From Macrostomum lignano (lineage: Eukaryota): a stretch of DNA of 64,000 nucleotides. Shown here one piece after another: positions 57,511-63,400 of the stretch. The number at the start of each line of letters is the position of its first letter. Position 1 is the stretch's first letter. Both the position numbers and the translations under genes were made by a program. The stretch lies in assembly GCA_002269645.1 (NCBI GenBank), contig NIVC01000230.1:744001-808000 (forward strand), in the 5' to 3' direction. The notes beneath the pieces are model-generated. The model was not told where the DNA came from. It saw only the letters and a program-made list of their open reading frames with translations, and made no database searches.

Positions 57511-58039
57511 CTTAACTATCTACCATTAGAATGCCTACTGAACTGCACGCTTGAATATATCTACTCAAATGTCTTCAAAATCTTTTGCGAGGTTTTTCAA
57601 AGATTCACTGTCGCCCATCAATGATGCACAGATATTCATAGTAAAACAATGTTTAGCAAACCTCAATAGCCAAGCAATGGTTGCTGTTGCAGCAGGTCCT
57701 GAAATCCCTGCCATCCCGTCCGTTTGCCCTTTTTTTCTTAAAAACATCTCAAAATATCCCAGGTTTAATGCATTGGTACACAGGGCTGCGATGAACCAGT
57801 CAGGTGACTTATCTGAGCAGAAGTGCACGCAGATAAAGGGTCAACTTATTCGCTGTCTTAAGTCCTCAGCTGCTCAAGCTGTATCAAAGAAGTAGATCTG
57901 CAAAAATATTTACTAATTGGACCAAATCGGATGGAATTAATTAATCAATGCAGGAGAGCATGACACATTTGATTGGATTTCTGGCTGACTGGATTTGCGT
58001 GGGTAAAGAGAGTTATTACTCCAAACTAGGATTTAAACA

Positions 58040-59208
58040 TAGATAGATAGATAGATAGATAGATAGATAGATAGATAGATAGATAGATAGATAGATAGAT
58101 AGATAGATAGATAGATAGATGGATAGATAGATAGATAGATAGATAGATAGATAGATAGATAGATAGATAGATAGATAGATAGATAGATAGATAGATAGAT
58201 AGATAGATAGATAGATAGATAGATAGATAGATAGATAGATAGATAGATAGATAGATAGATAGATAGATAGATAGATAGATAGATAGATAGATAGATAGAT
58301 AGATAGATAGATAGACAGATAGATAGATAGATAGATAGATAGATGGATAGATAGATAGATAGATAGATAGATAGATAGATAGATAGATAGATAGATAGAT
58401 AGATAGATAGATAGATAGATAGATAGATAGATAGATAGATAGATAGATAGATAGATAGATAGATAGATAGATAGATGGATAGATAGATAGATAGATAGAT
58501 AGATAGATAGATAGATAGATAGATAGATAGATAGATAGATAGATAGATAGATAGATAGATAGATAGATAGATAGATAGATAGATAGATAGATAGATAGAT
58601 AGATTGATAGATAGATAGATAGATAGATAGATAGATAGATAGATAGATAGATAGATAGATAGACAGATAGATAGATAGATAGATAGATAGATAGACAGAT
58701 AGATAGATAGATAGATAGATAGATGGATAGATAGATAGATAGATAGATAGATAGATAGATAGATAGATAGATAGATAGATAGATAGATAGATAGATAGAT
58801 AGATAGATAGATAGATAGATAGATAGATAGATAGATAGATAGATAGATAGATAGATAGATAGATAGATAGATAGATAGATAGATAGATAGATAGATAGAT
58901 AGATAGATAGATAGATAGATAGATAGATAGATAGATAGATAGATAGATAGATAGATAGATAGATAGATAGATAGATAGATAGATAGATAGATAGATAGAT
59001 AGATAGATAGATAGATAGATAGATAGATGGATAGATAGATAGATAGATAGATAGATAGATAGATAGATAGATAGATAGATAGATAGATAGATAGATAGAT
59101 AGATAGATAGATAGATAGATAGATAGATAGATAGATAGATAGATAGATAGATAGATAGATAGATAGATAGATAGATAGATAGATAGATAGATAGATAGAT
59201 AGATAGAT
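58040..59208. repeat. (GATA)n microsatellite, about 1.17 kb
   Basis: Direct reading. Confidence 0.98.
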
Positions 59209-59285
59209 ATTCATAAGGCAGTTTGAAACTGCAAACCACGCACTCGGAAGATATTGAAGGTTACCAGTTGTCGAATGTTCGAAAA

Positions 59286-59326
59286 AAACCGATATTTCGG
59301 CCCAGACTGGGCCTTCGTCAGGGTTT
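59286..59326 (-). ncRNA. Minimal type I hammerhead ribozyme (Penelope/retrozyme type)
   Basis: Minus strand reads AAACC CUGACGA A GGCCCA-GUC-UGGGCC GAAA UA UC^GGUUU. The catalytic core is intact, with a 6-bp stem II, a 5-bp stem I (AAACC/GGUUU) and a self-complementary minimal stem III (AUAU). Predicted cleavage is between 59291 and 59290. Confidence 0.85.
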
Positions 59327-59683
59327 ATTTATTCGGGTTTAAAAACAAATATATTGGCAGTGAAGTTATTGTAACATAATTTCAATATATATATATGCGA
59401 CTTTTGGGGGTGCACTGAGCAGTGTTGAGTAAAGATGTGTACGCATAATTAGTTAAAAACGTGAGTTGAAGCACGCTGATTGGTTAAAGATTGGCAGCTT
59501 AAAGCCTTGCACAAAAATATTAAAGATGTTAGGTGCTATAGAAAAACAGATTTAGAGCGTAGAAGTGTATGAATAAGCATCTTGAAAAGTTCAACAAATA
59601 AGTTATTTACGCCCGTAGAATTGAGAACAAATATTAAATTAAAACAGAGCACTGAGAACTTTGAGAACTGAGAAAATTGAGTC

Positions 59684-60396
59684 GCCAGGCAGGCCACTAG
59701 TTGCAGTTGGCGGCGTCTGGTCACAGATCGCCGCCTGCACAGCCCCTGGTCACAGGCGACTGGGCACTGCAGATCAGTTGAGGCTAGATTATCAGTAGTA
59801 GTAGCACTAGTAGTTGCAGTAGTAGCTCGTAGTAGTAGTAATGGAAGTAGTAGTAGTACAAGTATTAGTAGAGTAGTAGTAGAGCAGTCGTAGGCGTAGT
59901 CGTAGTAGAGACGTACTGGTAAGCAGTTATTTGAAGTAGCCAGGCAGCCACTAGTTGCAGTTGGCGGCGTCTGGTCACAGATCGCCGCCTGCACAGCCCT
60001 GGTCACAGGCGACTGGCACTGCGGATCAGTTGAAGCTAGATTTTCAGTAGTAGTAGCACTAGTAGTTGCAGTAGTAGCTCGTAGTAGTAGTAATGGAAGT
60101 AGTAGTAGTACAAGTATTAGTAGAGTAGTAGTAGAGCAGTCGTAGGCGTAGTCGTAGTAGAGACGTACTGGTAAGCAGTTATTTGAAGTAGCCAGGCAGG
60201 CCACTAGTCGCAGTTGGCGGCGTCTGGTCACAGATCGCCGCCTGCACAGCCCCTGGTCACAGGCGACTGGGCACTGCGGATCAGTTGAAGCTAGATTTTC
60301 AGTAGTAGTAGCACTAGTAGTTGCAGTAGTAGTAGTAGTGGTAGTAGAGTAGTAGTAGTACAGTCGTAGTCGTAGCCGTAGTCGTAGTAGTGTCGT
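59684..60396. repeat. About 254-bp tandem repeat, 2.8 copies (GC-rich hairpin half plus GTA-rich half)
   Basis: Unit starts CCAGGCAG at 59685, 59940 and 60192. Confidence 0.93.
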
Positions 60397-60460
60397 GATT
60401 TCTGGCTGACTGGATTTGCGTGGGTAAAGAGAGTTATTACTCCAAACTAGGATTTAAACA

Positions 60461-63400
60461 TAGATTAGATTAGATAGATAGATAGATAGATAGATAGATA
60501 GATAGATAGATAGATAGATAGATAGATAGATAGATAGTATAGATGGATAGATAAGATAAGATAGATAGATAGATAGATAGATAGATAGATAGATAGATAG
60601 ATAGATAGATAGATACGATAGATAGATAGATAGATAGATAGATAGATAGATAGATAGATAGATAGATAGATAGATAATAGATAGATAGATAGATAGATCG
60701 ATAAGATAGATAGATAGATAGATAGATAGATAGATAGATAGATAGATAGATAGATAGATAGATAGATAGATAGATAGATAGATAGATAGATAGATAGAAG
60801 ATAGATAGATAGATAGATAGATAGATAGATAGATAGATCGATAGATAGATAGATAGATAGATAGATAGATAGATAGATTAGATAGATAGATAGATAGATA
60901 GATAGATAGATAGATAGATAGATAGATAGATAGATAGATAGATAGATGATAGATAGATAGATAGATAGATAGATAGATAGATAGATAGATAGATAGATAG
61001 ATAGATAGATAGATAGATAGATAGATAGATAGATAGATAGATAGATAGATAGATAGATAGACAGATAGATAGATAGATAGATAGATAGATGGATAGATAG
61101 ATAGATAGATAGATAGATAGATAGATAAGATAGATAGATAGATAGATAGATAGATAGATAGATATAGATAGATAGATAGATAGATAGATAGATAGATAGA
61201 ATGGATAGATGGATAGATAGATAGATAGATAGATAGATAGATAAATAGATAGATAGATAGATAGATAGATAGATAGATAGATAGATAGATAGATAGATAG
61301 ATAGATAGATAGAAGAGATAGATAGATAGATAGATAGATAGATGGATAGATAGATAGATAGATAGATAGATAGATAGATAGATAGATAGATAGATAGATA
61401 GATAGATAGATAGATAGATAGATAGATAGATAGATAGATAGATAGATAGATAGATAGATAGATGGATAGATAGATAGATAGATAGATAGATAGATAGATA
61501 GATAGATAGATAGATAGATAGATAGATAGATAGATTAGATAGATAGATAGATAGATAGATAGATAGATAGATAGATAGATAGATAGATTGTAGATAGATA
61601 GATAGATAGATAGATAGAGATAGATAGATAGATAGATAGATAGACAGATAGATAGATAGATAGATAGATAGATAGACAGATAGAGATAGATAGATAGGAT
61701 AGATGGATAGATAGATAGATAGATAGATAGATAGATAGATAGATATGATAGATAGATAGATAGATAGATAGATAGATAGATAGATAGATAGATAGATAGA
61801 TAGATAGATAGATAGATAGATAGATAGATAGATAGATAGATAGATAGATAGATAGATAGATAGATAGATAGATAGATAGATAGATAGATAGATAGATAGA
61901 TAGATAGATAGATAGATAGATAGATAGATAGATAGATAGATAGATAGATAGATAGACAGATAGATAGATAGATAGATAGATAGATGGATAGATAGATAGG
62001 ATAGATAGATAGATAGATAGATAGATAGATAGATAGATAGATAGATAGATAGATAGATAGATAGATAGATAGATAGATAGATAGATGGATAGATAGATAG
62101 ATAGATAGATAGATAGATAGATAGATAGATAGATAGATAGATAGATAGATAGATAGATAGATAGATAGATAGATAGATAGATAGATAGATAGATAGATAG
62201 ATAGATAGATAGATGATAGATAGATAGATAGATAGATAGATAGATAGATAGATAGATAGATAGATAGATAGATAGATAGATAGATAGATAGATGGATAGA
62301 TAGATAGATAGATAGATAGATATATAGATAGATAGATAGATAGATAGATAGATAGATAGATAGATAGATAGATGGATAGATAGATAGATAGATAGATAGA
62401 TAGATAGATAGATAGATAGATAGATAGATAGATAGATAGATAGATAGATGGATAGATAGATAGATAGATAGATAGATAGATAGATAGATAGATTAGATAG
62501 ATAGATAGATAATAGATAGATAGATAGATAGATAGATAGATAGATAGATAGATAGATGGATAGATAGATAGATAGATAGATAGATAGATAGATAGATAGA
62601 TAGATAGATAGATAGATAGATAGATAGATAGATAGATAGATAGATAGATAGATAGATAGATAGATAGATAGATAGATAGATAGATAGATAGATAGATAGA
62701 TAGATAGATAGATAGATAGATAGATAGATAGATAGATAGATAGATAGATAGATAGATAGATAGATAGATAGATAGATAGATAGATAGATAGATAGATAGA
62801 TAGATAGATAGATAGATAGATAGATAGATAAGATAGATAGATAGATAGATAGATAGATAGATAGATAGATAGATAGATAGATAGATAGATAGATAGATAG
62901 ATAGATAGATAGATAGATAGATAGATAGATAGATAGATAGATAGATAGATAGATAGATAGATAGATAGATAGATAGATAGATAGATAGATAGATAGAAGA
63001 TAGATAGATAGATAGATAGATAGATGGATAGATAGATAGATAGATAGATAGATAGATAGATAGATAGATAGATAGATAGATAGATAATAGATAGATAGAT
63101 AGATAGATAGATAGATAGATAGATAGATAGATAGATAGATAGATAGATGGATAGATAGATAGATAGATAGATAGATAGATAGATAGATAGATAGATAGAT
63201 AGATAGATAGATAGATAGATAGATAGATAGATAGATAGATAGATAGATAGATAGATAGATAGATAGATAGATAGATAGATAGATAGATAGATGATAGATA
63301 GATAGATAGATAGATAGATAGATAGATAGATAGATGGATAGATAGATAGATAGATAGATAGATAGATAGATAGATAGATAGATAGATAGATAGATAGATA

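Follow-up and report, generated by a model that had tools for sequence, protein, structure and literature searches.

A predicted minimal hammerhead motif of Penelope-like type between two homologous (GATA)n arrays of Macrostomum lignano

Minimal hammerhead ribozymes (min-HHRs) of Penelope-like elements (PLEs) are already known in thousands from the genomes of invertebrates and lower vertebrates. Several traits recur in them that were not forced by the search for them: (i) a bulged nucleotide, (ii) a G10.1-C11.1 pair, (iii) a longer helix II combined with a shorter helix I and (iv) palindromic positions 15.2-16.2 without a real helix III (Cervera & de la Pena 2014, PMC4209133). For lack of a real helix III, two copies must pair; even good min-HHRs cleave poorly in vitro, and most min-HHRs are solo motifs thought to derive from truncated PLEs (PMC4209133). 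Here we describe a motif of this kind in 64,000 nucleotides of Macrostomum lignano DNA (NCBI GenBank assembly GCA_002269645.1, contig NIVC01000230.1, positions 744,001 to 808,000 of the forward strand), referred to below, at its full length, as the window. The motif lies in a 1,190-bp non-coding unit placed between two long (GATA)n arrays, and its identification as a PLE-type minimal hammerhead fragment, an object of a known kind, is credible as judged from the sequence. One more solo copy of such a motif is ordinary; the noteworthy part is the layout of the locus.

Autonomous PLEs carry pseudo-long terminal repeats (pLTRs) or lie in partial tandem, optionally with a tail of 30-40 bp, while non-LTR retrozymes are expressed as small circular RNAs. 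The insertion of PLEs is biased towards microsatellite and AT-rich DNA (PMC8557442); their insertions are mostly 5'-truncated and aimed at microsatellites, the de novo ones being short (PMC8557442, PMC9977147). For the PLE of Anolis, the only one reconstituted in vitro, the cut of the hammerhead ribozyme (HHR) has been placed at 26 nt within the open reading frame (ORF) and the start of reverse transcription at 111-118 nt, so that copies in the genome stop 85-92 nt downstream of the cut (PMC11167929). Animal retrozymes are at present regarded as derivatives of the pLTRs of PLEs (PMC7229834; 10.64898/2026.07.22.740005); by definition, a non-LTR retrozyme comprises two or more units of ~150-450 bp in direct succession, every one of them with a complete type I HHR (Li et al. 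2026, preprint 10.64898/2026.07.22.740005).

Near its right end the window contains two mismatch-free copies of a leader string (GATTTCTGGCTGACTGG...AAACATAGAT), each of which leads directly into a kilobase-scale (GATA)n array. A repeat comparison of the 64-kb window gave exact identity of the two copies (69/69). The bases preceding them are unlike each other (..TTGATTG before copy 1 vs ..GTGTCGT before copy 2), and the final 6 nt of the leader (ATAGAT) are in register with the GATA array, which leaves a unique part of ~63 bp. Read on the minus strand, the order is array 2 - leader' - unit - array 1 - leader' - flank. The features of the locus are as follows.

57451-57975: non-coding flank, unique in the window, preceding leader copy 1
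57976-58044, plus strand: leader copy 1 (unique part 57976-58038), 100% identical to 60397-60465
58045-59206, plus strand: (GATA)n array 1, ~290 units with 9 substitution variants and no indels
59207-60396, minus strand: non-coding unit between the arrays, 1,190 bp, single-copy in the window
59207-59290, minus strand: 3' end of the unit, 84 nt past the predicted cut, with GAGUGCG and a terminal hairpin (59215-59229), abutting (TATC)n
59282-59330, minus strand: minimal type I hammerhead (min-HHR), predicted cut 59291/59290
59333-59328, minus strand: AATAAA
59341-59679, minus strand: AT-rich spacer, 32% GC
59680-60396, minus strand: 2.8 tandem copies of a 252-254-bp repeat, 90-98% alike
60397-60465, plus strand: leader copy 2, adjoining the end of the 254-bp repeats directly
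60466-64000, plus strand: (GATA)n array 2, at least 3.5 kb, still running at the end of the window

The two arrays were tokenised into units and compared by their variants. Counted from the leader, array 1 reads 19 GATG 48 GACA 6 GATG 32 GATG 31 GATT 14 GACA 7 GACA 6 GATG 75 GATG 44, which gives the landmark order GATG, GACA-6-GATG, GATG, GATT, GACA-7-GACA-6-GATG, GATG. The same landmarks occur in the same order in array 2 from 60466 to ~61990 (~1.5 kb), with extra blocks of 30-84 units; past this collinear part, array 2 extends over another 2 kb or more that is rich in GATG. The unit-level alignment of the two arrays scored 17.75, vs 10.8 +/- 1.7 for shuffled orders, and none of 200 shuffles reached this value. 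At the nucleotide level (megablast), 57976-59207 and 60397-61644 are 96.9% identical over 1.25 kb. The ordered variant units common to both arrays indicate that the leader and at least 0.7 kb of array were copied as one block and that arrays 1 and 2 did not grow independently. An earlier reading of the same DNA, made from its letters only (the sequence-only reading), had noted the duplicated 69-bp leader running each time into a kilobase-scale GATA array, and between the arrays a 1.2-kb non-coding unit composed of 254-bp repeats, an AT-rich spacer, AATAAA, a hammerhead, a GAGTGCG-containing end and (TATC)n. We found all of these features at the coordinates given there, and the duplication of leader plus array that it proposed is upheld, as a block copy, by the collinear variant units.

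Array 2 also contains ~45 interruptions by indels of one to three bases, denser towards 64000, and array 1 contains none. Neither array 1 nor a third array of the window, described below, has indel interruptions outside the repeated pattern. This suggests either a poorer consensus in array 2 or an array much older than the identical leader implies.

Other origins of the leader were tried and rejected. It might be the 3' end of a (GATA)n-tailed long or short interspersed nuclear element (LINE or SINE) inserted twice, which we rejected as the principal explanation because independently made tails would not have the same ordered variants. A coding exon or a known transposon comprising leader and flank was ruled out (no Pfam match and no homologue in 1.8 billion proteins); likewise, the flank ORF at 57551-57895 has no Pfam match and no relative among 1.8 billion proteins. 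A diverged extension of the 254-bp repeat was ruled out by an alignment score under the shuffle mean, and an alignment of the leader with the unit gave no significant similarity.

The unit ends, on its minus strand, in a terminal hairpin of the form GCAGUUU-N-AAACUGC. Its AT-rich spacer contains no ORF and has no similarity elsewhere in the window. The copies of the 252-254-bp repeat, for which the self-comparison of the window gave further pairwise identities of 94% and 90%, each carry a (TAC)n-like stretch besides a GC-rich hairpin block; the junction with leader copy 2 truncates the third of them, and none contains a CUGANGA...GAAA hammerhead core. The only ORF of the unit (231 aa) has no Pfam match, and nothing resembling a reverse transcriptase (RT) or an endonuclease was seen in the translations of the unit. 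A scan of the whole window with a GIY-YIG pattern, a crude search of low sensitivity, found no match. The unit thus does not have the ORF with telomerase-like RT and GIY-YIG endonuclease that marks an autonomous PLE. From its sequence, it is probably a non-autonomous, 5'-truncated terminal (pLTR-type) fragment of a Penelope-like retroelement.

The hammerhead motif itself (minus strand, 59330-59282) reads AAAUAAACC-CUGACGA-A-GGCCCA-GUC-UGGGCC-GAAA-UA-UC/GGUUUUUUU, where the slash marks the predicted cut. Its parts, all on the minus strand, are the following.

59330-59322 and 59290-59282: helix I, 5 contiguous pairs (8 with one U.U allowed)
59321-59315: core CUGACGA
59314: bulged A, after A9
59313-59299: helix II, GGCCCA/GUC/UGGGCC, 6 bp
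59298-59295: core box GAAA
59294-59293: UA
59292-59291: U16.1-C17 (UC), followed by the cut

The motif has the type I core order (CUGANGA ... GAAA ... UH, with helices I and II), and all four traits of PLE min-HHRs (PMC4209133) are present in it. The G10.1-C11.1 pair is formed by the G at 59313 and the C at 59299, and within GAAA-UA-UC the positions A15.1 U A U16.1 are self-complementary, which provides the palindromic 15.2-16.2; helix III of a dimer would consist of four A-U pairs (AUAU) and would be weak. The unconstrained minimum free energy (MFE) fold of the region has the shape of helix I plus helix II (-14.8 kcal/mol). A relaxed min-HHR descriptor matched only once on both strands of the 64-kb window. 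Chance was assessed with 300 sequences of 59 kb, simulated from first-order Markov models with the dinucleotide composition of the window; they gave 0.013 matches per 59 kb to the relaxed descriptor, and none of the 300 contained a motif as good as that of the window. Rfam covariance searches yielded only chance matches and no hammerhead, either in the whole window (gathering thresholds) or in 59150-59750 (E up to 10); this silence would be expected of a motif that lacks helix III. The earlier identification of a minimal type I hammerhead of the PLE kind thus holds at the level of sequence, given the four traits and the MFE fold, and the core predicts the same cut site (59290/59291) as had been proposed.

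Helix III can form only with a partner copy, which a lone hammerhead does not have; the motif is therefore most likely a remnant that cleaves little or not at all here. The RNA left by the predicted cleavage (59291-59298, minus strand) would end in ...GAAAUAUC, and thus in one UAUC unit, the same as that of the neighbouring microsatellite. This match is probably a coincidence, of roughly 1 in 10. A role of the UAUC end as a priming device was rejected for this locus, the genomic junction being 84 nt beyond the cut.

The window motif resembles the described PLE min-HHRs (PMC4209133) in its core, the bulge after A9, G10.1-C11.1, the long helix II, the short helix I and the lack of a helix III beyond the palindromic 15.2-16.2, as well as in being solo in non-coding DNA; it differs in that no flanking PLE ORF or second pLTR is seen and in that its dimer helix III is AUAU only. 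With animal non-LTR retrozymes (Cervera & de la Pena 2020, PMC7229834; 10.64898/2026.07.22.740005) the unit shares its non-coding character and the type I HHR. Retrozymes, however, are built of 150-450-bp tandem units each with an HHR, whereas here a single HHR lies in 1.19 kb and the 254-bp tandem repeats have no HHR core, so the label of retrozyme applied in the sequence-only reading fails the definition. The locus can also be compared with the Dualen LINE insertions of Chlamydomonas (PMC9977147), in which an insert is likewise flanked on either side by the same host sequence, several hundred bp or more in length; around the unit, such flanking identity is seen in the one allele compared. 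The Dualen insertions are de novo events at a known empty site, made by a LINE with two endonucleases, whereas at this locus one allele is seen and the type of element is deduced. Captures and partial tandems of PLEs in Adineta vaga (PMC3846280) similarly show host sequence between or beside terminal repeats and a tandem layout, but have two recognisable pLTRs and target-site duplications of 8-10 bp; here one PLE-like end is visible.

The window contains a further kilobase-scale array in the opposite orientation to arrays 1 and 2.

52819-54209: third array, (TATC)349, with the recurring higher-order pattern AATA-3-GATG-1-GTA

No leader, unit or HHR accompanies this array, and its flanks are unrelated to those of arrays 1 and 2. 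The hammerhead element is thus not required for large GATA tracts in this genome. The sequence-only reading had offered the element as a retrotransposition route for the very large GATA tracts, a proposal that the third array, with its other flanks and other variants, contradicts. Taken as a whole, that reading keeps its PLE-type min-HHR and its leader-array block copy, and loses both the retrozyme and the route by which the tracts would have arisen.

Our tentative preference, which falls short of a probable explanation, is that the unit represents a lone PLE-derived terminal fragment next to an array that was already there, within a local DNA-level duplication. A 5'-truncated terminal fragment of a PLE would have landed at the edge of a (GATA)n array, a choice of site that would fit the preference of the PLE endonuclease for microsatellite or AT-rich DNA. 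The arrays would not have been made by the element but would be ordinary products of slippage and unequal exchange, with their own higher-order variant patterns, and the repeated leader and array would be a copy of pre-existing host DNA. The copy would most likely have arisen by DNA-level tandem duplication of a 2,421-bp block (leader, array and unit), with array 2 growing afterwards. The window contains further segmental duplications at the DNA level (334-910 with 10547-11123; 2018-2972 with 16997-17945) and more than 15 tandem arrays, which raises the prior probability of a tandem duplication. Moreover, the 84 nt between the predicted cut and the end of the unit resemble the 85-92 nt of the Anolis PLE, an agreement that is suggestive, not proof. 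Several observations weigh against this explanation. A tandem duplication of the block would predict a second unit beyond array 2, and none is seen in at least 3.5 kb of array 2 up to the end of the window; a simple tandem duplication therefore needs at least 2 kb of growth at the far end of array 2, or shrinkage of array 1. The layout (duplicated block - unit - duplicated block - flank) is equally expected from a target-primed insertion with a very long target-site duplication. In addition, the PLE origin is deduced from one motif, neither RT nor GIY-YIG remnants having been seen in the unit or its vicinity, and the hammerhead is predicted from the sequence of one copy.

A long target-site duplication and a PLE-style partial tandem, taken together, are also quite possible. 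It is rather unlikely that a non-autonomous element with a hammerhead, mobilised by a PLE, inserted at the array edge and in doing so copied the leader and over 1 kb of microsatellite, either as a long target-site duplication or as captured cargo. The target-primed version, near to the idea of the sequence-only reading, starts from an empty site (TATC)n-leader'-flank on the minus strand, with the first nick inside the array and the second at 57975/57976; the 5'-truncated unit would have been copied in, and fill-in would have duplicated ~1.2 kb or more of array plus the leader. It fits the block-unit-block-flank layout by construction and needs no extra expansion for the at least 2 kb of array 2 past the collinear part. 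The 5' end of the unit, lying inside a repeat, looks like a 5' truncation, its 3' end faces the array, as expected for a microsatellite-preferring endonuclease (PMC8557442), and there is a precedent in the de novo Dualen insertions, whose flanking duplications have a median of 900 bp (PMC9977147). We nevertheless consider it unlikely. The target-site duplications of PLEs reported so far are short (8-10 bp in Adineta vaga, PMC3846280), the largest duplication reported before Dualen was 126 bp, those of Dualen were tentatively ascribed to its two endonucleases, and even where the arrays are collinear, blocks of 30-84 units set them apart, which calls for later change anyway. More doubtful still is a PLE-style partial tandem, in which the mobile unit would be [unit-(TATC)n-leader'], the host array and leader having been captured by a pLTR-driven element. 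The leader does recur after one full period, which can be read as such a tandem of a 5'-truncated copy followed by a full one; the next period would fall past the end of the window, and a second hammerhead, able to pair with the first, would lie beyond array 2. Tandem or partial-tandem arrangements are typical of PLEs (PMC11167929, PMC8557442), a minimal HHR requires a second copy (PMC4209133), and rotifer PLE pLTRs have captured and moved 0.9-1.5 kb of host DNA, even a whole gene (PMC3846280). Yet such a mobile unit would exceed animal retrozymes (170-400 nt; PMC7229834) tenfold in size, the window contains it no second time, and a 1.2-kb microsatellite inside the RNA of a retroelement is, to our knowledge, without precedent.

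Two further explanations concern the data and the motif. We regard it as improbable that the second leader and array 2 are a misplaced allelic or collapsed version of leader copy 1 and array 1. The full identity of the leaders and the indel interruptions of array 2 (~45, rising towards 64000), which point to a poor consensus, would fit such an assembly artefact, but the junction 60396/60397 lies in clean, unique sequence, would not be made by a simple haplotype bubble and needs reads joining the 254-bp repeats to the leader. A hammerhead match by chance, with the unit being mere spacer DNA between satellites, is the least probable of all the explanations considered. The motif is a single copy without covariation, Rfam is silent, the dimer helix III would be of A-U pairs only, extrapolation from the simulations gives some hundreds of chance matches per Gb to the relaxed descriptor, and a 23-base form of the pattern matched metagenome contigs five times (see below), all of the matches being unrelated. 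It is, however, difficult to reconcile with the 0/300 simulated 59-kb sequences holding an equally good motif, with the joint presence of the bulged nucleotide, G10.1-C11.1 and the palindromic 15.2-16.2, none of them forced by the core search, and with the position near the end of a non-coding unit, which fits PLE anatomy.

If leader and array were duplicated on insertion, a PLE-type element would here have made a kilobase-scale target-site duplication or captured host DNA. The locus would then be a concrete example of a retro-insertion seeding a new long microsatellite array, and retrotransposition would be a way to duplicate whole arrays. Should a second unit lie beyond array 2, the locus would be just another local duplication in a region rich in satellites.

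Outside the window, the pattern ACCCTGACGA-N12-20-CGAAATATCGGT had five matches among metagenome contigs of the Joint Genome Institute (JGI), two of them in one coding sequence and three in termite-gut contigs with a long palindrome. They were rejected as relatives of the hammerhead, none having helix II or similarity to the unit. In two of the termite-gut contigs (L003, 1496-1536; L005, 1002-1042) the match reads CUGACGA...GAAAUAUC, with flanking bases as in the window motif; embedded in a long perfect palindrome and lacking a proper helix II, it is a look-alike and not a relative. Searches of viral contigs with the HHR pattern, the leader and the core of the 254-bp repeat, and of prokaryote genome contigs with the HHR pattern and the leader, gave 0 matches.

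The window also contains, according to Pfam matches, exons of DEG/ENaC, P2X, RING and G protein-coupled receptor (GPCR) genes and a Ty3/gypsy element, and it is unusually rich in tandem repeats. The Ty3/gypsy element (12453-16529, plus strand) has an uninterrupted gag-pol ORF of 1,358 aa, whose pol part has its best match (62%) in a metagenome contig. It is flanked by two copies of a DEG/ENaC (ASC) gene region, 93-97% identical (334-910 / 10547-11123; 2018-2972 / 16997-17945), which represent a DNA-level segmental duplication of 10-15 kb. An inverted repeat pair (30909-31638 / 32653-33385), 98.8% identical over 733 bp and with arms ~1 kb apart, looks like a foldback or terminal inverted repeat-type element and contains no hammerhead core. 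For a rhodopsin/Srw-like GPCR ORF of 465 aa (50735-52132, minus strand), a search of 5.8 billion proteins gave no relative at E<1e-5, and the best named relative of the P2X receptor exon (42485-42931, minus strand) is from the trematode Paragonimus westermani (65% identity); the host lineage seems to be poorly sampled.

The remaining repeats comprise interstitial telomere-like (CTAACC)n, several tetra- and heptanucleotide arrays of 0.5-1 kb and many minisatellites of 1-2 kb with units of 22-34 bp.

25332-25393; 48830-49315; 45470-45937; 54555-55477; 8118-9585; 26207-28174; 35554-36984; 41422-42405; 43394-44883: telomere-like, tetra- and heptanucleotide, and minisatellite arrays

Two different 22-mers of these minisatellites both end in GCCATTT.

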